From Trichosphaerium sp. ATCC 40318 (lineage: Eukaryota > Protista > Tubulinea): DNA of 64,000 nucleotides. The stretch spans positions 62,001 through 126,000 of the forward strand of contig JALMLS010000488.1 of the NCBI GenBank assembly GCA_038496445.1, in the 5' to 3' direction. Positions 4,666-35,379 of the stretch are shown here, one piece after another; position 1 is the stretch's first letter, and each line of letters starts with the position of its first letter. Below the pieces are notes generated by a model. The model worked only from the letters and a program-made list of their open reading frames with translations. It ran no database searches and had not been told where the DNA came from. The translations under genes were made by a program, and so were the position numbers.

Positions 4666-7657
4666 TTATTGGGCGTCAGCTTCTGCCTGTACGAGGTCGC
4701 CTGACGAAAAAATGAGCTTAAAGTGTTCCAAAACACCCTTCTCGTATCCTAGCTCTGCTAGCGCTCGCTTTACTACACCAAGTATTAGTATTCATACGGT
4801 TAAAAGTCGAATACCTGTTGGCCATTCAGGTGCTTCTTTGGCATTCTTTGGGAGCGCGCGGAGGAAAGAAATTAAGGAATTTCTTAGTTCTATGCGTTTG
4901 TGTGTTAGCCACTCACAAAATATGGGTTGAAGATAAGAAACTACCTATTTGAGATTGATTCAGGAGAGCATCATATTGAGGTTTAAGAAGAAATTCTTTT
5001 GTAGTGGTTGCCAAAGAGCAGACATAGTCGAGGAATATTTCCTAGTTTGTCACGTGTTAGTTATTTATAGAGGTACAAGACTGAAGAGACGTACTATTCT
5101 CCTAGCTGCTTCAGGTATTGAAGCTGACTCGTCTGACATTGGTACTACATGTAAGTCATTACCCCATATCAGTTGTGTTTCATGATTGCTCCTAATTAGT
5201 TCATTCAAAGTTAGTAATAATTCTTCTTTTGTTTGTGTAGTACAAGAGCTGTAAGGCAGTGCCGAACTTGGCATCAAGTTGTTGCCGTTTTTGCTGTATT
5301 ACATCGGGGTTTTCCGTCCACTTTGCCCCTTTGCTAAAAGTTTACAATGTGAGTATTTGTTCAATTGTCTTTATATTGTGTCATACCTCGATGATATAGA
5401 TCGTCTTACTTCATCAGCAATGCGATGAAAGTTATCATCCTTTAACGAGAACCCAGCAAAGAGCATATGTTGCGTAATTAACAGTGATTGTACGATACCC
5501 GACAGTGCTGATCTGCGTGTTGCATAGCGCATGTAATGTTCCTAGTATTGTTAATAAAATCTGAAATCCAATCAATTAAAGCTGATGGACTCACCCTTGT
5601 GAGTACAATATCCTCAGGGTGGCTCGCGCAGCCATGAAGTTTGAGTATCCATCTATCACACTTTGAAGCAGGCGCATACGGTAAAATGGCCGTGTCTAGT
5701 ACTAATTTAGATATTACTTTGTCATCGACAACTTTACCGTATCCAGCGCTTCTGGAAGCTAACTCAAACATTTCATTGTAATTTGTCGTGACTATCTAAA
5801 AAAAATGGATAGGTTAACCCTTAATTTAATTAGGTCGCGATAATCTTACTTGATGTACTGGAAGTCCAGCAAGGAGTGTACATGACAAAGAGTATGAATG
5901 CACTTGTACAAGCTCTGCAACTGTTTTATTGAGTTCTGTTTCACCTCCTAGACGGTTCTCAATAACAGAAGCACTGTCCAGGACATTCATCTAACAAAGG
6001 GTCAGTTCAACACTTGTTAACACAACTATCGTTTCGTTATACATACCTTTTTAATGACAGCTTTTTCTTTGGGCGTCATTTGTGCGCGATCTGCCAGTCG
6101 TTCAAGCAACTCTCCCCACGTAGGCATACCTGCCCCTGCACTAGTACATGAGATTAACGAACAATCAAAGCTGTATAAGTTCCTAAAAGGGACTGTTACC
6201 TAACGCCAGATCCCAAGAACAGGACTAACCGCTCATCTCGTAGAAGATTAGCACTAACTTTATTAGGTGTTTGAAATTTATGCCAGTTGAATCACGTGCA
6301 GTCGTTTGCCTTCACTCAAGAGTTTGTCATCATGATTTAGTACTTTTCTCCAGAGGTTGACCTGTTTAGCAAAACGTTCACGTTCTAATTGAATAGCTGT
6401 GATAGCAGCACGTTTCAAGTTGACAAGTGCTATATCAAACTCAAACCTAGACAAGAAGGGTAAAAACCAACAAAAAAAAAACTTGATATTAAGAAAAACG
6501 GAATAGTACTTTTTAGCAGCCTTGAACAATACAGGAAGAAGTGATACTATAATACCTCCTGTTGACCTACACAGTACAATAAATATCAATATCAAATACA
6601 AACAAGCGACTCACGCGCTGGCACCTCCTTGTCCTGTTCCAACAAGTGGTAATGCAACAAGATGTTTCCATCTTCCGTTTCTTGGTTTTTTGTCTTTCAA
6701 GTCGTCATGAACTTGAGAAAAGAATTCACGTGCTCCATCAATGTACCACTAATTTAGAATCATGACTGTGTTTTAACCTTTTTTTAAAATACATACTTGA
6801 ATATCAGCGATTGGTTTCCTTTCATGTTTCTGCGCAATTCGGTTCGAATGTATAAGTTTATCACAGCTAAAAGAGCCATGTTAAATCGTTCATAAACAGT
6901 CATGTATACTCTTACCGAGAACATAATTGTGCCTTATCTGCTTCACAATATATAGTAGCGCTCATTTCGACATTACAATGGTGACAAGCAGGGAGCTACG
7001 CCGAGGAACTGTCAGTACCTATTCAACAAAAAAAAAGAAAAAAGGATGTACTTTTATCCCACCAACATTTACTAGCCATGGCATACCACGTGACTTTCTA
7101 TACTCATAACCGTTACATTTGAATACTCTCATCGCTATATAAATTTATCAGAAAGACAGCTGAGTTTAAAAGACGAATAGGTTATTGCCTTTGTTGGTCC
7201 AATCCTTTGGTCTTTGAGGAAGCCCAAGTTTTTCTTTTGGAACGCCCCACGTTTTTTCAACGGTCCATTTTTCATCCGTTGGAAGCTGAAAAAAGCGATT
7301 ACGTGAGGTTCTTAGTCATAGCAGTAAAAGTCGTACCATCCATGCGTCACAAGTTAATTTGGAAAGATCGCCATGCACTACAAACACATGGCCGCTTTGT
7401 GGAGTGATTTCATACTGATCCAACGTACGATATGCCTGTTTACGTAGGATATCGCGAACTTTGTTATACGGTTTAGATTTCGTTATTTTATATTACGTAC
7501 GTCCTTCTATGTTCGCATCTAAGGCTTTACGACCTCCTTTGGGCGTAATGCAAGCAGAACTATTGAGGTTTTTTGCCATTGCCGGCACAGACGTCCCATT
7601 GGTCGGGGTAACTATATTTGCCGATAACGGCGTGGTTATATTGCTTTCTTCGGCCAT
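4666..7657 (-). CDS. Macrodomain-like + SIR2_2 (SIR2-like) fusion protein
   Basis: N-terminal GHVFVVHGDLSKLTCDAWMLPTD and LVALPLVGTGQGG (macro-like). C-terminal LVLFLGSGVSAGAGMPTWGELL, IVTTNYNEMFE, LKLHGCASHPEDIVLT and HMLFAGFSLKDDNF (SIR2_2). About a dozen introns. Confidence 0.85.
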
Positions 7658-13063: not shown

Positions 13064-13681
13064 GTGCAGTAGCAGGATCCCGTGTTGCATAAATAACCTA
13101 ATTTGAGTGTATGACTTTATTTTTGAGACACAGTTCAAGGCAAACAATATTAGTTGTAACATACCCATTGTTCCTAAAATGGAATATGATTAGTTTTAAC
13201 TTACCCTGCGCTGCAAATAATTTGCAAAATAGCCTCCCCAGAAACAGCCTTACAGTACATTACAGCACCCACTGAGATGTCCCAGAAAGCGCCATAGGTA
13301 GCCCTTTTGCAACTCTGCAAGCTACCAATTATTACATCCTTGTGGAGTACTTTACATCATGGTAAGAGGAGAAAGTCACGTGCGCTCTACAAATAATGAG
13401 TGGCGTTTTAAAAAGAATTGCGTTGAGGTAAATGTTCTACATACTTCCTTTGTAATGTCTCAAACTGCTGGAGCATGACGCTGCTTGAATAAATTTTGTT
13501 TCAACGACTCTGAATCTTGTTGACCTTTGTCAACTTTATGTTAACTGTAGCACGCTACACTAGCCCCTACGCGTTGTTTTCTGTTATGTAGGCGTATCAG
13601 TTCGTTAAAATGGTAACCAGACGTTAAAATGCTTAAACTTACTCTATTACGTAGCTCTCGGCTAATTTACAAGAAGCTTTA

Positions 13682-15867
13682 TTGCTACTCCAACGTAAAC
13701 GACAATTAAACCAAACTCGACCAACGAATGCTGAAGAGCTAACAACGAATCAACTGGCCTTAGCCAATGTTACTAAAAAGCTTGAAGCTCTTTTACAAGC
13801 TGACAGCAGCGTTTCAAGCCAAATAACTACTGCATCACGTGCGGTTGGTACACCAACAAGGAAACAGCTCAAAGACAAATTCAAAGACCTCCAACGCGCA
13901 ACAAAACAAGCACTGATGTCCTCAAGTGACTTGGGAAGCAACACATCAGAAGAGCTTGTCACCAAACCCATTCAAAAGCTACAATGTTGCGTTATACACG
14001 ACTTGTCGCTGTACCAGCGCGCATCGAACAGTGTGCTATTGTGTAAGGTATTCACTCAATGCAACATGAAGGTAGGCGTCAGTTTTGGCGTAGAAGATGT
14101 TGATGGCCATGTTATTCTAGCAAGTGTTTATAACACACTTGAGGCTACCCAGAAGGGGCTAGATAAAGTTTTTTACCCTGGACGTGTCATCGCTTGGAAA
14201 GCACCGTACTTGAAACTATCAGCTCATGGGCCAAACACATTCATTCGATGTGACAACCCTGATAATCTCGAGTTCATTGATGATCTCTCCTCGCCTGTTC
14301 TCATGTCTACGTCTTGGTATATCAAGGCTTCTGTTTCAGCTGATTGTACAGCAGATGGATGGAAGCTCAAGGGTAATGCATGGGTGGCAGATGGGAAATG
14401 GGTTGAAGCCATCAAGTGCTATACAAAGGGCATTGATATAGATTCAAGTCATTTTATTCTCTTGTCGAACCGTAGCCAAGCTTTTATCAAACTTGGACGA
14501 TGGGAAAAAGCTCTAAGTGATGCAAAAAGAGCACTTGAAATCAATCCAAAACATGAAAAGAGCTCTTTCAGAGCCGCTACTGCCTTGTTTGCTCTAGAAC
14601 GCTATTCTGAAGCACTGCCTTACTATGAGAGAATAACATCTTCTGCAGTCAGGATACAGACGGAGCGGACGAGGACGGCTATTAAGCAAAGTGAGGAAGG
14701 TTCTTATGACTGGGTACAAATGATCAAGACATTTATGAGCACATCGTGTACAAGGTTCAATTGTGCTAGTTTTATATCACGCCAAGTTCGTATAGATGAA
14801 GTTTCCGGAAAAGGACGTGGTATTGTCGCTAACTGTGATATTCCATCAGGTAGCTTGATATTTGTCGAAAAGGGCATAGCGATGGTATACGAAAAAGAAG
14901 CTGAAGGTATCTCTTTAGACATTGAATATGGTGTCAAAAGGATAAAGGACAAAGTCACTAAAGGTAAGCGTAAACACTTCATTCTTTGACGGATGTAGAT
15001 ATCTGTTGATTGAACTAACATTTAATAGCATTAATTGGTCGGATAAAGAAAAGAGTACAACGCGATGAGCTTGTTAGGAATAGGATAAATAATTTGTCTT
15101 GTAATGATTTTTCAGAAGCAGTTGCAAGTCAAGCGATTGGGACTTCTATAAAACATGCTATTGGCACTAATGCATGGCGAATATACAATAGATTAAAACC
15201 TAAAGAAGAGGGGGCAATACTTTTCTACTGGATCAGCCTGTTAAACCATGACTGCAACCCGAATGCCTCACTTTATTTTTTTGGAAACCTTGGGATTGTC
15301 AAGACTTTAAGAAAACTAGAAAAAGATGAAGAACTTGTCATTTCTTATGTTCCCACAGATCACTTTGTAACAGAGCGGCGTGATGGCCTAAAGTTTAGGT
15401 CTTTCAAGTGCAGTTGTAGTCGATGCAAGAAGGAGTTAAATGCATCTAATATTGAGCTGTTTAACGAAATAGAAGGTTCAATACAGGAACTTCTAGACAG
15501 TGCCAAGCGAGGGAATAAGAATTTACACCAAAGTCCAGATTTCTTACAAACAATGGAACTCATAAAGCGCCTTAAGGATGATTTCTCTGTAGCTTTGATA
15601 GGGTTATTAAAAGTGGTTCTGATAGCCTGCTCTGGTAGGGTTGGCGTTGACGCAATTGACCTTCGCACACGCTTGGTTAACTTGCACAGTTACGAATTAC
15701 ATGGCGGTAACGGATGTCGTATTGCATTGGACTGCATTGTGCTCTCTCTTATGGATTCAAAAAACTCAGAAAAATGGCAAAGTCAAGCGAAACATTGGCT
15801 CCAAATGGTAGTGCCCAATTGTTTAGTAGACTCGCTGTACAATGAACTATCTAGAGTTACTAAGTAA
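13682..15867 (+). CDS. TPR + SET domain lysine methyltransferase (start uncertain)
   Basis: TPR motifs (WKLKGNAW...AIKCYTKGI, LSNRSQAFIKLGRWEKALSDA). SET motifs SGKGRGIVA, LLNHDCNPNA, EELVISY and post-SET FKCSCSRC. One intron near 14964-15029. Confidence 0.85.
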
Positions 15868-16573: not shown

Positions 16574-17987
<1,414 letters not shown>

Positions 17988-18413
17988 GTGCATTGATTGT
18001 ATTTTTAAATACTTAATAAATTGTCCATTATACATTCTCGTCTTTGTTGCAGTGAAAACCGAGGCAGTCTAGGCTTGTACAAAATTGTTTATTTTGTTAA
18101 CTACAGCGGTAGTATTTATTACCAGTCAGTTCTTGCATTTGCTGTATCTGCCTCAAGTAGGCTGTTCTGGTTGGTTACACTGCACTGTCGTCTAAAATCA
18201 GAAAAATAAATCAGGAAATAAGGTTTGGATTATCAATCGTCAATTTACTTCTAAGATACTATTGTTGCAATTCTGCACCCGTGGCTGGTATGTATGATGT
18301 ATACCTTCGCATAACAGATACATTATGTGTTAAGGCTAAAGCTCAAAGGAGTAGCTTAGACGTTAGCAAAAATCAAGAGAATTTCATATGTAAGTTCAAG
18401 TTTCAAACAGCAA

Positions 18414-18485
18414 GCCTTCTTAGCTCAGCGGTAGAGCGAACGGTTCTTGTCCGTTTGGTCATGGGTTCAATCCCCATAGGAGGCT
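18414..18485 (+). tRNA. tRNA-Lys(CTT), atypical anticodon loop
   Basis: 72-nt cloverleaf: acceptor GCCTTCT/AGGAGGC, D arm GCTC/GAGC, anticodon arm AACGG-TTCTTGT-CCGTT, T arm ATGGG-TTCAATC-CCCAT. TTTT just downstream. Confidence 0.8.
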
Positions 18486-19448
18486 GTAAATACTTTTAGT
18501 ATGCACGTTACAGAGTTTACAAACTAAAATTAATACCTGAAATTGCATACTCTAATTCAAACACAACAAGTCCATTTCGCCACTAAACTTGATTATATTC
18601 AAATAAAATGGGTGCTTTTATACACTGATGTGTGCAAGAAAATAACAATCGGACGTAACAGAGCTCAAAATCAAGAAAAGAAAATTTCAGTGAACGTTGC
18701 CGTTTCAAATCTTTGGCACTTTGATCACACATCCCACAATTTTATTAATTCTACACAATGCTGATGATAAAAGGTTATTGACGTTTCCTTTTCATGTGTT
18801 TCTCGGCCTAATGGCTTTGATCATATGTAGTAAAACTTCAGCTTGGGTTAAACCCCAGGCAAGTGACCACGTGTCACTTCCTTCTTAACTCATTATTTGG
18901 AAAACTAGTGGTGCATTGATATTGCTTGCAATGTCAGTTTCCACACAGTGATTATCCTAGCACAGCACCACCCACTAGAGTCGTAGTCACTTTTTTATGC
19001 TCTTCGGATGAGTTCTAAAAGTATTTTGCAATCTAATGTAAGGAAGTGGTATTGACCGCCTTTTGGCGTAGCTGTAAGCTAGATTTCCTTATACTAATTG
19101 TCAAATGATTGTACAAGCATGCTTTTTCTTCGCCATATGAATGCTGTTATGATCAACAAAATATCACCCAATTAAGCAAGCACTGTAAACGACGTTGAAT
19201 GGTCTAGCGGTTGTGCGCGATGCATACTTTGTCACCCTTGGTAATATTAGACACTATTGTATTGTAGTACATTAAAACGTGATATAATAATTTAACATTA
19301 TATTGTGGTTCTTGCTACAAACATAACGGCGATATCACCGTAATCTTTTTGCCAAATTTGTGTCGTACCGCGGTCAATATTTTTACGTTGGCTTCTTTCT
19401 TGTGCGCTGCTATTGATGCTGCAGCAAGTTAAGACATAGACGGGTAGT

Positions 19449-26830: not shown

Positions 26831-29800
26831 TTACACTCTACTCCACGGATTACGTGAAGGATTCGGTACTTGAGACCTTTAATACAAAGATAAGCAAGTT
26901 TTAAAAAGGCATGGGAAAAAAAAAAACACGTGATTTCACACGTGCAATAAAAGTTTTTTGTTTGAGACAAAAAGTGATCTTTTACCTTTTAGTTTGATTA
27001 TTGACAGGGTTCGATTTTCCATTCATTCTTTGTCCATGTTGCTTCCATACAGAATGAACTTGTTTTGTTGCTGTTGTGGCTTTCTTCTGTTTAACCATCT
27101 CTGTTGTTTGTTTTGTTTGAGGTTTAGCTTGTTTATGTTTAGGGCTATCCATAAGGTACTCAGGTACACGATCTGACGATTTTGATACTGCGCCTTTAGC
27201 TCCAGCATTGTTTTGATGCATAAGAAGAAGTGTTTCATAAATGTCTTGTCTCATTTGTTGGATTGTACTGTTTGCGTTATTATCAACTTGTGATTTACCG
27301 CTTTCATCTGGTAGTTGACTGCTATCAGTGGTTTCTTTCAAGCGGTTCATTAAACCAACGAGCTTCTTATGAACACTATCTAGTGTTGATGCAGCTTCCT
27401 GTCCACTTCGAACTCTCAGTTGTTTTGTAACATCAATTTGCTCATGATCATCTTGGACTTCTTGTGTCGAACTGTTGTTTGGTACATCAGTCTTTAAAGG
27501 ATGTTCTTCAAGCATGACAGAACTAGAGGGGCATGAGGAATCAGAAAGAAAGAGCGGTGAAACCAAGACAAGAAGAGAAAAGTACCGTAGTATGCTCAGC
27601 AGGTTAAACGTTGTTTGCTTTGGATGAAAAGGGACTGTGAGTTTATTCTCGATCCATTCAACAACTTGGCCATATGTAGTCAGATTCGGCTGTTTATCGT
27701 GAACAAACTAGATACAGAAATGAGACACCTCCAATGCGAGTACTGTTGGGTTTTTCTGATCCAATGTAAACAAAAATAAAGTACCAGCTTCAGTAGTGCG
27801 TGATAGGCTAAGAACTTAGCTGATTTCATATTAGGCGCTTCTGTTTGTACTTTATACTGCATCCATCTCGCTAAAAAAGGTAACAATGAGTTGTGTACAG
27901 TTGATATTGATTTGCTTCTTTTTTTTTGAAAGTATTTAAAGCCATTTCTCACCATTACAAATATACGATGGTGCCGGCTCCTCATCTTCAGTATCAGCCT
28001 CTATCTCTTTGTAAGATAACTCAACACCCATCTGTCTGGTTCTAAAAATAACGTGAATATCACAGCAAGTTCATGAAAATCACGTGATTTAAAAAACCTG
28101 CACGTGTAAAGAAATATGAGCATAAACGCGTGTCGTACTTGTTTACATAATCGTCAATAAGCCAAACGATATTTTTAGTCTTTCCGTCATGTTCTAGAAT
28201 TCCAGGATCACTTAGAGGTAAGTACGCATTGCGTCCAAACTTATCCTCGCTTGCTGCTGATTTCATTGCCCACGATTCAGGATTAGGAAAGTACCCTGGA
28301 CATAGTACATCAAGAGTTGCGATTGAAGCCTTTTTTTGTATTTATGAGATAAAAAACACAAACTTGGTTTAGTTTTGTACCATTCTCTTTGCTAGTTTCT
28401 TGCTCAAAGCACGACCTGTGCTGAACTGTTTACCACCTATAAATACAGTACATCCAAAAGGGTGCTATTAAAAATAGTCAACACAAAGCAGAGTAAAAAG
28501 AGAAACAATACGTACAACTTCATTGGTATCTTCATCTAGATGAAATTTAGGCAAGCAATTGAAAATGTTAACACAGTACTCCTGCAAAAACGTAACAGGT
28601 GACTTTCCTCTAATGGGAAACGTTAATATTTAAGCGTAAAAATCATGTATAAAGACGTACTCTGGATCAAGTTCAACAATGGATTTGCGGTTTTGCTTCC
28701 AATGTCTGGTTTGTTTATTTTTTTCTGGTTTTTTTTTCCTTCTTTTAATTATATCTGCTACTATCCACATAACACTTTTCTTTATCTCATCTTCAGTGCC
28801 TCCTTCTGGAAAGGCATCACATGGATCTATATGAGTTTCAAATTCATCAGCCTACCATCGATAAGTTCAAACAAAAAAGTTTGAGAGCAATAAAAAGCTT
28901 CCCAGTTTGGGCGTCAAAATACGCTTGCTATACGTTCAACTGATCTATTGTTTAATTTCTTACCTTTTTAGATGATTTGTCTTTTGTCTCTTCGTTTGGT
29001 TTTATCTCTCCTTCTTCGAGTACCTGCAGAAAAAACATAAGAACCTTTAAGAATTTTTCTCAACTAACAAGAAACCAACAATACCTTTGCTTCCTTAGCT
29101 GCTTTTCTAGCTTTTTCCGCTTCCTTAATATTACAAGTTACCATAAGCTAGTTACCTAAGCCATAAAAATAGATTTTTCTTGCATCTGTATGCAAGGCAA
29201 GCGCCAAAAAAGTCAAATCTTTTACTGTTTTTGATGCTCAAAAACAATTCCTTTTTTAATGCGCAGTGAACAATTTACTTGTCACTGTTAATTGGAGTAT
29301 TCTGTAAAACAGTGAAGTAAAATGACCACTGCAACAAAAGGACATGATAACGTAGAATAGAGCTTAACACGTGGAGGCATCTGATAAAAGAAAACAGACC
29401 AAAAAAAAACCAAAAAGCTTTTGATTGTATACCTCATCAATGGCGTAGTAGGTGTCTGTTGGTGGTTCATCAGATATTTTAGGTTGTGAAGATGGCTTTC
29501 CATCTTTTCTTGCCTCGTAGGATTCCAGGAAAGTCTTCTCTGTCGGGCTATAAGTGTGATAAGAAAAACGTTTCATCTTCAAAAAAAAGTCCTTAAAAAA
29601 ATAAGCAATGCTGACTTACTCTTCTATGAGAACTTTAAACGCCCAAAGTGGTACAAGATGTTTCTTGGCGTCCCTGCAACGTCTAGTATGGGTTAATAAT
29701 GGCGAGTTTTTTTATCAAAAAATAAACACGTCACCTGTAAGGTCTAGTCCAAGAAATAACTCCAGATCGTGTATGCAAATAAAAATTTAACCCATTGGCA

Positions 29801-30643
29801 TGTTTACATATTTCCCAGCCTACACACAAAGTCAGAAAAAGATGAATCATGGCAAACAATACAGTGGTCTTTACTGTAGCAATACGCTAATGTATTTTGT
29901 AGGTAACCTTGGAGACGCCAGTGGTCCCTCACAGGTTGTAAAGAATTGGTAAATTAGAAAGAACCACAAAGTTCTTTTCTCATTTTTTTTGAAAATTGTC
30001 TTCAAAAAAAAGTAATGTACCACGTGGTAATGTAGCATGCTTTGGTATTTCATCTTGACGTTCAAGGGCTGCCTCTTGACGTTTTTTCTTTAAGTCAGTA
30101 ATGTACTGTCGTACTTCCTCAGCTATGGCATTATACTTGGCCAACTGTTCATCAGAAATACTAACAAACGCGTCAGAGACCCAAAAAAACCCAAAAGACA
30201 CAGCTGTCAGTGTCAAAAAAAAAATTGTACCGTTTGTGTGAAAAGCTAACAGTGGCAGTACTGGTAGGCTCTTGTGGTTGTTTTGGTTGTTTTGGTGCGT
30301 TTTGAGACTTTGCCGCGTTTTGGTTCGCATTTCGCTTTTTCCCTCGCTTTTTATGTGTTTGGCTTTCACCTTTGGTAGTACTACGCTTTGTTTGGTATCC
30401 TTGTTGACGATTATTGCCGTTATGAGTTGAAGGATTATTATATTGTCTCTGGTACGAGCTATGACCATCTCTTCGCGTATCATAGGAATTTTGAGAGCGT
30501 TCATTATCGCCTCGAGTAGTATAACCTCTAGCAGTTCTATATCGCTTTGTATTGCGCCCTGCATCGTCATATCGTTCTCTCTGGCCGTTATACCGCTCTC
30601 TATTTTCTCTACCGTAACCGTCCCTGCCACGCTTTCTGCTCAT
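26831..30643 (-). CDS. DGCR8: DGCR8/Pasha-like Microprocessor subunit (WW/RHED, dsRBD1, dsRBD2, C-terminal tail)
   Basis: LPRGWEICKHANGLNFYLHTRSGVISWTRPY...KKHLVPL; HPFGCTVFIGGKQFSTGRALSKKLAKRMASIATLDVLCP; SAKFLAYHALLKL...PNLTTYGQVV; FNLLSILRSVM. Domain order is colinear with animal DGCR8. Confidence 0.85.
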
Positions 30644-34484: not shown

Positions 34485-35379
34485 ATGTCTAACGAGTACA
34501 AACTATATTACTGGCCTGGAGCTCCAGGAAGAGGAGAATATATAAGATTGCTGTTTGAAGCAACCGGCACGCCATATACTGATGTCGTACGCTTATTTTA
34601 GCGACTTATAGCCTATTTGAATTTAATCAGTTTAAACTAAGGCCCAATTGCCAGAAGAACAAGGTGGGACGTATAAAGCAGTACTACCTTACACCAGCGG
34701 AAACAATGAAGGGTATATAAACTCGCGTTCGTCAGTTTTCTCATTATTCTAGTTTTCCAACGCTAGCACCTCCAGTATTGGTTCACAATGGACTGACATT
34801 GAGTCAAACATCAAATATTTGCCAGTACGTTGGAACCAAATTGGGTTTGGTTGGCAAAGCAGAAACAGACCTGTATTTGGTTAATCAAGTAGCTTTAACG
34901 ATTGCTGATGTAACTGCCGAGGTGCGTAAATGACTTTTAAATATAATTACCTTTAAATGAGTCCTAACGCGTGTCAGGTTCATGACACGCACCATCCTGT
35001 TGATATAACAGCGAATTACGAGGATCAGAAGCCTGAATCGCTAAAAGCAGCGAAAAGGTTCTGTCAAACGCGTCTACCAAAGTTTCTAAAGTACTTTGAA
35101 CGTATTCTGACACAAAACAAATCAGGAAATGGAAAATTTTTGGTCGGAGACAGTTTGACCTATGCTGACCTTATGTTCTACCATTTTTTGGTTGCTGTTG
35201 GTTATGCCTTCCCAAAATCATTTAAGAAAGCAACAAAGTTATCACCAAAATGTATTGCTTTCCGTGATAGTATTGGTGCAATTCCAAAAGTTGCAGCATA
35301 CATTAAAAGTGATAAAAGACAAAAGTTCTCAAATAATGTATTCCGTCAATATCCAGAGCTTGATCAGCCAGGAGAATAA
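34485..35379 (+). CDS. Glutathione S-transferase
   Basis: YKLYYWPGAPGRGEYIRLLFE, APPVL, LSQTSNI, EVHDTHHP and FLVGDSLTYADL. Confidence 0.92.

Follow-up and report, generated by a model that had tools for sequence, protein, structure and literature searches.

[quoted passage not shown] Outside the animals, the Pasha of ichthyosporeans has two dsRBDs, accompanied in three species by a WW domain (Bråte et al. 2018, PMC6206976). Some of these domains were detected by just one of two annotation programs (PMC6206976), which suggests that the domains of non-animal Pasha proteins are highly divergent. In the nucleus of the amoebozoan Dictyostelium, the maturation of microRNA requires RbdB, which is described simply as a dsRBD-containing protein in the relevant sections of two sources (PMC4894637, PMC5056781). 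Its partner is the Dicer-like DrnB, which clusters with the Dicers according to the part of PMC5056781 that treats it. The initial annotation of the locus described here had set Drosha–Pasha in animals and ichthyosporeans beside DrnB and RbdB in Dictyostelium, and this agrees with PMC6206976 and with the corresponding sections of PMC5056781.

According to the model for Amoebozoa in the same sections of PMC5056781, Drosha proteins evolved in Opisthokonta only. A 2026 review reports DGCR8 as “not identified” in Acanthamoeba or Naegleria, and the table of the same review includes an Acanthamoeba protein with 40% identity to human Drosha at an E-value of 2e-78 (PMC13315211). In the surveyed literature, no report of Pasha beyond animals and ichthyosporeans was found.

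The locus studied here lies on the minus strand of the window, i.e., the whole stretch of 64,000 nucleotides that was analyzed. It runs from an ATG at 30643 to a stop codon at 26833-26831 and carries a single open frame of 795 aa in 17 exons. The limits originally claimed for the gene, 26831-30643, coincide exactly with this stop codon and ATG. All 16 introns of the model are GT-AG and the frame is uninterrupted. The GC content is 0.40 in the exons versus 0.32 in the introns, which are T-rich. The exon labels are working numbers, the last of the model's 17 exons carrying the label 18. The features are as follows:

26831-30643, minus strand: whole gene; GT-AG model, 17 exons, 795 aa.
30231-30643, minus strand: exon 1, N-terminal and basic, with abundant R, N, Q, S and K and including a KKRGKKR stretch; from sequence and composition.
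30021-30160, minus strand: exon 2, predicted helical segment with a ...LPRG end; acceptor 30161/30160 confirmed by RNA.
29735-29819, minus strand: exon 3, WW domain, protein residues 186-212; from PDB matches to DGCR8.
29620-29682, minus strand: exon 4, post-WW extension, ..KKHLVPLWAFKVLIE; from the gene model, with an in-frame alternative acceptor at 29673.
29433-29547, minus strand: exon 5, DPTEKTFLESYEARK...YYAIDE; predicted.
28964-29380, minus strand: candidate middle exons 29380-29330, 29123-29085 and 29023-28964, jointly about 50 aa; uncertain, from enumerated frame-compatible chains.
28661-28851, minus strand: exon 10, acidic then lysine-rich, ahead of dsRBD1; from the gene model.
28516-28609, minus strand: exon 11, first dsRBD1 half comprising helix 1 and strand 1, GKSPVTFLQEYC...; from the gene model.
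28381-28464, minus strand: exon 12, core of dsRBD1 with strands 2-3 and SKKLAK as the start of helix 2; from dsrm and PDB matches, donor 28380 confirmed by RNA.
28139-28329, minus strand: exon 13, last part of helix 2 in dsRBD1, then the linker, then the second dsRBD-like domain's helix 1; acceptor confirmed by RNA.
27785-28041, minus strand: exons 14 (28041-27953) and 15 (27870-27785), second dsRBD-like domain with its strands and helix 2; low-confidence fold.
27586-27689, minus strand: exon 16, helix following dsRBD2 (PNLTTYGQVVEWIENK), which is the last helix of the structural model, and start of the tail; alternative acceptor at 27707.
26986-27522, minus strand: exon 17, long Q/S/K/T-rich tail of about 180 aa; RNA contigs over 26984-27319.
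26831-26876, minus strand: exon 18 (17th of the model), final 15 codons and stop; RNA joint skipping 26877-26985.

RNA-derived contigs from three public runs of two studies contain the spliced joints 30231/30160, 28381/28329 and 26986/26876. The first of these confirms the exon 1 donor at 30230, and the contig that skips 26877-26985 also shows that the 3′-UTR reaches at least 26777. The proposed splicing is confirmed by RNA at 3 of the 16 introns; no joint connects the WW exons with those of the dsRBDs, between which 29420-28876 has no usable contig coverage. The in-frame 63-nt intron at 27585-27523 is predicted only. Following the strong GTAAGT donor at 29619, exon 5 was given the acceptor 29548, as no other keeps the frame; those at 29577 and 29592 are out of phase and were rejected. 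The candidate exons 29328-29279 and 29196-29167 were also rejected, as their phases leave no stop-free path to the next exons. A gene model maximizing coding length was discarded since it draws intron sequence into the exons. By position, exon 10 corresponds to the C-terminal part of the RNA-binding haem domain of DGCR8. Exon 1 matched no Pfam family; its basic region may serve in nuclear localization or in RNA contact.

The gene is probably native to the genome in which it lies. Half of its introns (8/16) have donors starting with GTAC, and the same holds for all three introns of the neighboring actin gene in the window. No report of a GTACG donor in amoebae was found in the literature.

The WW exon and the exon that follows had been placed by the initial annotation at 29735-29819 and 29620-29682, and both sets of coordinates are correct in the spliced model. 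The LPRG/W motif is formed solely by the splice between exons 2 and 3, with exon 2 providing the “LPxG” that precedes the first tryptophan of the WW domain. When the WW exon was compared with the 177,635 solved sequences of the PDB, the top matches were the WW/dimerization domains of DGCR8, 4E5R (E 0.0014) and 3LE4 (E 0.0027), ahead of the WW domains of PRP40 and NEDD4L. The matches derive from frog and human DGCR8, with 12 of 27 positions identical across human residues 307-333. Taken alone, the 27-aa exon 3 gives a Pfam WW E-value of 0.012, which misses the cut-off. The exon encodes an atypical WW domain. Exon 4 alone had no match in the PDB. It may resemble the stretch that follows the WW domain in DGCR8. 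Judged by eye against human DGCR8, the haem-ligand cysteine appears to be absent, with a valine at the aligned place.

For the first dsRBD, a 41-aa piece composed of exon 12 and the start of exon 13 scores 25.8 bits against Pfam dsrm, for which the cut-off is 23. In the PDB, this second half of dsRBD1 matches four DGCR8 sequences with E-values of 4e-7 to 6e-6, the best being to human DGCR8 residues 541-579 (E 4e-7, 20/39 identical). Among the solved sequences to which this comparison applies, the next families are ADAR (2.5e-3), PKR (4.8e-3) and Staufen (0.14). DGCR8 leads these three families by 3–4 orders of magnitude in E-value, and its score is 33 bits versus 21 each for ADAR and PKR. Even exon 12 alone reaches a Pfam dsrm E-value of 4e-4 and has four DGCR8 sequences as its top PDB matches (human residues 541-566). 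Exon 11 alone has no Pfam or PDB signal, and exon 10 matched designed helical repeat proteins only, with no DGCR8, by phmmer against the PDB.

The second domain is different in that it has no match by phmmer in the PDB or in Pfam dsrm, and no similarity to the dsRBD1 of the same protein. A single-sequence AlphaFold model of protein residues 495-583, with a low-confidence mean pLDDT of 63.8, gives the element order helix-strand-strand-strand-helix-helix, which is the dsRBD topology with an extra helix. The best 50 Foldseek matches of this model are nearly all dsRBDs, although weak with E-values of 0.02 at best, and VIA-align yields Z-scores of 5–6.3 that are tied across dsRBD families. Against the DGCR8 chain (614-697), model residues 1-89 align with a Z-score of 5.6, covering the whole model including the C-terminal helix. 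The model suggests, at low confidence, that the second domain is a strongly diverged dsRBD with a helix behind it, and the domain may act as a working RNA-binding domain.

The initial annotation had described a “full” subunit. The analysis does not bear out “full”: the matches claimed for the linker, dsRBD2 and the tail were not recovered by phmmer or Pfam. No DGCR8 or Pfam dsrm signal was obtained by sequence for these three regions or for the post-WW segment. For exons 4, 10, 11, 13, 15 and 16, and likewise for the latter half of dsRBD2, phmmer against the PDB returned no DGCR8; the top match of exon 16 was a glutaminyl-tRNA synthetase at chance level. In DGCR8 the C-terminal tail binds Drosha; here the exon 17 tail gave only chance-level rows and no family in Pfam, and short helical motifs are beyond such searches. 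The peptides quoted at the outset were all found after splicing: LPRGWEICKH...WTRPY, KKHLVPL, HPFGCTVFIGGKQFSTGRALSKKLAKRM/ASIATLDVLCP, LPLSDPGI and PNLTTYGQVV. The helix given as “IQEYC” was misread, as the sequence is FLQEYC.

The modules are arranged in the order WW domain, approximately 170-200 aa, dsRBD1, a linker of approximately 35 aa, and a dsRBD-fold domain with its helix. The offset of human DGCR8 numbering minus that of the protein is 121 at the WW domain, 122 at dsRBD1 and 119 at dsRBD2, the last by structure alignment. The spacing between the WW domain and dsRBD1 thus equals that of the human protein to within one residue; both this figure and the offset of 121 hinge on guessed exons that amount to about 50 aa. 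With DGCR8 as the top solved-structure match for both modules detectable by sequence, the likeness exceeds chance. The order, the near-constant offsets and these best matches uphold the original “DGCR8/Pasha-like” label, and the gene is a probable member of the Pasha family.

The most favored reading is that the locus is a single native, expressed nuclear gene of the DGCR8/Pasha family, and that its product probably serves as the RNA-recognition partner of a Drosha-type RNase III. By analogy with animal Pasha, the two dsRBDs would bind stem-loop RNA. The protein would recognize and position this RNA in the nucleus for a Drosha-type, Dicer-unlike RNase III, which would then cut the hairpin precursors to release small-RNA precursors. 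The WW region may mediate dimerization, and binding to the RNase III and a role in the microRNA pathway would be expected. A Drosha partner is plausible given the Drosha-like protein of Acanthamoeba (PMC13315211).

A further and more tentative step is that the host is an amoebozoan, and that the gene and a Drosha-type RNase III encoded at another place in the genome represent a vertically inherited Microprocessor of the animal type. If this is true, the Drosha–Pasha pair is no younger than the last ancestor that Amoebozoa share with Opisthokonta and would have disappeared from, or been replaced in, fungi, dictyostelids and other groups; an origin of Drosha restricted to opisthokonts or holozoans would thereby be overturned. 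With an amoebozoan orthologue of Pasha, the origin of the machinery would shift to the root of Amorphea or before it, and the shared ancestry of the animal and amoeba hairpin-microRNA pathways would become testable, either here or in a culturable relative.

The importance of the gene hinges on the placement of the host. Were the host a holozoan, for instance an ichthyosporean or some other single-celled relative of animals, the gene would still be a true Pasha, but an ordinary one from a lineage in which the Microprocessor is already on record. The host markers examined leave room for this: a SET/TPR reading frame matched generic TPR proteins only, a GST exon is of bacterial type, and for an actin exon, animal actins and the Dictyostelium actin are equally close, at 95-97% identity. 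A ThiF/MOCS3 exon returned taxa only at the domain level from the Atlas. Ichthyosporean Pasha proteins with a WW domain are also on record (PMC6206976). Against a holozoan host, exon 13 has no relatives among 1.84 billion representative proteins, its single match, a bacterial repeat protein, being spurious; this would be surprising if ichthyosporeans were close kin, yet exon 13 is poorly conserved. The exon had no usable match in the PDB or the ESM Atlas when searched alone. In JGI metagenome contigs it hit five loci, all of them cytochrome P450 genes sharing “YFPNPESW”, and these were rejected as relatives. Overall, a holozoan host is considered unlikely.

It is likewise improbable that the protein is a mere lookalike of DGCR8, arising through convergent shuffling of WW and dsRBD modules or as a distant paralogue. 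Such a protein would be a general dsRNA-binding protein, e.g., a Dicer partner of the RbdB, HYL1 or TRBP kind, or a factor in RNA localization or editing. The case for it is that the DGCR8-specific signal is confined to the WW domain and one half of dsRBD1, about 66 residues in all, with the remainder undetectable by sequence, and that the microRNA cofactor of Dictyostelium, RbdB, pairs with a Dicer-like enzyme in the sections of PMC4894637 and PMC5056781 concerned. However, the WW domain and dsRBD1 independently select DGCR8 as best among the 177,635 solved sequences, and the order and spacing of all three modules are those of DGCR8. To our knowledge, no other dsRBD family carries a WW domain, which also counts against a lookalike. 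A Dicer partner would be expected to have dsRBDs without a WW domain and to be closest to that family. What was found was a WW domain and a dsRBD1 nearest to DGCR8 (E 4e-7); among the known Dicer partners in the PDB, DRB3 appeared at an E-value of 0.47, while TRBP, Loquacious and HYL1 were unlisted.

The Pasha-family reading also assumes one gene, and a mis-modelled gene or two adjacent genes on the same strand could be envisaged instead, with a WW protein ending near 29366 and a dsRBD protein starting from an ATG at 29144. This would be compatible with the stretch left uncovered by RNA contigs (29420-28876), with the stop that follows after about 22 codons when the exon-5 donor is read through, and with the ATG at 29144 being in frame with the next exon (the EAEKARK exon). 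Fewer than 250 bases would then be left for a terminator and a promoter, frame-preserving GT-AG chains bridge the gap, and the two halves correspond to separate, correctly spaced parts of DGCR8. Two genes are therefore very unlikely here.

Horizontal transfer from a holozoan or animal, or a contaminating contig, would deprive the gene of any bearing on ancient ancestry, but despite the patchy distribution reported among organisms in the surveyed papers this is highly improbable, as the composition of the gene equals that of its flanks, the unusual GTAC donors are common to it and the neighboring actin gene, and even the best-conserved pieces are just ~44-51% identical to human DGCR8, which rules out a recent transfer and leaves an ancient one.

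The protein can be set against four described systems. HYL1/DRB1 and TRBP/Loquacious/PACT are tandem-dsRBD cofactors of RNase III enzymes, and they are among the structural neighbors of the second domain. No WW domain is known to us in any of them. RbdB would have the same expected function, that of an RNA-binding cofactor of an RNase III, and its sequence is absent from the PDB comparison. As far as we know, a WW domain has not been described in RbdB. Human and other vertebrate DGCR8 (PDB 3LE4, 4E5R, 1X47, 2YT4, 6V5B and 6LXD) differ from the protein in that dsRBD2, the linker, the remainder of the haem domain and the tail share no detectable sequence similarity, and in that the human tail is far shorter than the approximately 210 aa that follow the dsRBD core here. 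The two proteins nevertheless have the same module order with spacing within 3 residues, are of similar length (795 aa here versus 773 aa in human DGCR8) and both have a basic N-terminus. The ichthyosporean Pasha resembles the protein in combining, in three species, a WW domain with dsRBDs outside the animals, the second dsRBD being a low-confidence prediction here; the hosts in that case are holozoans.

The DGCR8/Pasha-like gene (the Pasha-like gene) lies at 26831-30643 on the minus strand of the window. Its start ATG at 30643 is preceded by an in-frame stop and its terminal stop is located at 26833-26831. In the 17-exon model these two points are exactly the gene limits that the initial annotation had proposed, and the coordinates that it gave for the two exons of the WW region (29735-29819 and 29620-29682) are likewise correct. 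All 16 introns between the chained exons are GT..AG-bounded, with the frame open over 795 codons; the exons within 29380-28964 are the best frame-compatible guess. The exons contain 40% G+C and 22% T, and the introns 32% G+C and 40% T.

The RNA evidence consists of short contigs from three public runs, belonging to one coded organism and two studies, matched at a likeness of at least 99%. They leave out 30161-30230, 28330-28380 and 26877-26985, and on the minus strand each skipped stretch starts with GT and ends with AG. The Pasha-like gene is therefore transcribed, and its introns 1, 11 and 16 are real. The C-terminus of the protein is fixed by the RNA-supported intron 16. None of the short contigs crosses the stretch from the WW exons to the dsRBD exons, where the other matches are of low complexity at 90-95% likeness. 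In exon 10, a stretch rich in A that encodes lysines (KRRKKKPEKNK; 28700-28750, minus strand) draws many short RNA-run matches at 90-95%; these are low-complexity matches and no measure of expression level. It is formally conceivable that the locus holds two genes, the second starting at the ATG at 29144, which shares its frame with the following exon.

The locus is a native gene and a contaminating animal contig is ruled out. The composition of the gene is that of its flanks, and GTAC-type splice donors occur in 8 of its 16 introns. An actin gene 10 kb away has GTACGC donors in all three of its introns. This preference for GTAC among the genome's splice donors is unusual relative to the common GTAAGT/GTRAGT and may be of aid in gene prediction and host identification. 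The window, at 33-44% G+C, is eukaryotic in character. Besides the Pasha-like gene, it contains the following:

5481-5795, minus strand: SIR2_2 (SIR2-like) domain exon (E 1e-9)
13655-15864, plus strand: TPR-plus-SET-domain gene; two long open frames of 444 and 282 aa that look like one gene
16575-17984, plus strand: actin gene with three short introns, at codons 4, 51 and 116
18413-18995, plus strand: tRNA-Lys(CTT) gene followed, some 300 bases downstream and in the same orientation, by a U2 snRNA gene, the pair lying just downstream of the actin gene
34957-35376, plus strand: exon for a GST C-terminal domain (Pfam GST_C_3, 1e-28 range)

The interest of the Pasha-like gene is evolutionary and depends on the placement of the host, whose position is left unfixed by three markers: the SET/TPR frame, the GST exon and the actin exon. 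The actin exon shares 95-97% identity with animal cytoplasmic actins and 95% with a Dictyostelium actin; where the gene's introns lie might carry phylogenetic information. The best 120 database matches of the GST exon are all GSTs of about 243 aa, 44-50% identical. Those with names belong to Burkholderiales, other Proteobacteria or soil metagenomes, and most of the GSTs are unnamed metagenome proteins. Such bacterial-type matches suggest that this gene was probably acquired from bacteria by the present eukaryote. Database matches to the TPR-plus-SET frames are confined to the TPR part (generic TPR proteins; a SET domain occurs in one fungal match), so the protein is without a close relative in the database searched.

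The kinship of the protein with DGCR8 was judged by matches to PDB sequences and structures. In the first dsRBD, exon 12 by itself (28381-28464, 28 aa) already ranks four DGCR8 sequences at the top of its solved-structure matches. Extending it across the RNA-confirmed junction by the opening 13 residues of exon 13 (28139-28329) gives a 41-aa piece that passes the Pfam dsrm cut-off (25.8 bits vs 23 bits). In the PDB this piece aligns with DGCR8 residues 541-579 (E 4e-7 to 6e-6; 20 identities in 39 residues), and the dsRBD families next in rank are ADAR (2.5e-3), PKR (4.8e-3), Staufen (0.14) and DRB3 (0.47).

The WW exon (27 residues) is sub-threshold in Pfam (WW, E 0.012). In a search against all 177,635 distinct solved-structure sequences, the WW/dimerisation domains of frog and human DGCR8 take the top two places (E 0.0014 and 0.0027; human residues 307-333), above PRP40, NEDD4L, SMURF and YAP. 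The canonical domain start, LPxGW, arises solely through splicing of exon 2 to exon 3. The solved-structure search gave no DGCR8 signal for the post-WW segment (exon 4) or exon 10. In a comparison by eye with the human sequence, the haem-ligand cysteine of DGCR8 is apparently replaced.

The second dsRBD of the initial annotation (residues 495-583) fails every sequence test, with no PDB match, no Pfam dsrm match and no likeness to the protein's own dsRBD1, but is moderately supported by a low-confidence fold. This model, made without an alignment (mean pLDDT 63.8), runs helix, three strands, helix, further helix. The best 50 Foldseek matches are nearly all dsRBDs at E of just 0.02-0.4, including PKR, ADAR, DGCR8, Loquacious, TRBP, HYL1, DRB, Staufen and RDE-4. 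The same set is tied in VIA-align (Z 5.1-6.3), in which DGCR8 covers the entire model including the extra helix (model 1-89 to DGCR8 614-697). On this basis, the presence of another dsRBD, highly divergent in sequence and trailed by a helix like that of DGCR8, is moderately supported. Sequence search of the linker and tail gave no DGCR8 signal, and a conserved Drosha-binding tail found no support by methods that cannot reach short helices. An unrestricted protein search with exon 13 found one spurious bacterial repeat protein; metagenome matches to this exon were rejected as relatives, being only P450 genes.

The domain identities are what the present data provide, and the working of the protein is proposed on the model of DGCR8. 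A core that binds stem-loop RNA would be built from the two dsRBDs and the packing helix, and the WW-containing region would mediate dimerisation. Nuclear targeting would fall to the basic N-terminus, which contains a KKRGKKR stretch, and the cutting enzyme, a Drosha-type RNase III, would be bound by a portion of the long tail. Such a partner enzyme is plausible. In a 2026 review, an Acanthamoeba protein is given as having 40% identity to human Drosha (E 2e-78), with DGCR8 “not identified” (PMC13315211), and small RNAs of Plasmodiophora are made by a Drosha-like enzyme (PMC13547706).

The literature searched records Pasha for animals and Ichthyosporea and for no other group. Amoebozoa are shown as an outgroup in the tree of Microprocessor distribution of Bråte et al. 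2018 (PMC6206976), and Kruse et al. 2016 state that Drosha evolved in Opisthokonta only (PMC5056781). A vertically inherited Microprocessor in Amoebozoa is a tentative prospect, somewhat on the doubtful side. The Pasha-like gene is at most a new member of a well-known protein family in an unexpected lineage.

Human DGCR8 carries the three modules in the same order and at the same distances, and is of near-equal length (773 aa vs 795 aa here). The offsets, human minus Pasha-like and computed purely from the residue numbers given by the searches, are 121 for the WW domain (307-186), 122 for dsRBD1 (541-419) and 119 for the second domain (614-495). The first of these rests on the guessed middle exons; the other two are independent of them. 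The shared order, distances and near-equal total length would be hard to account for other than by common descent with DGCR8.
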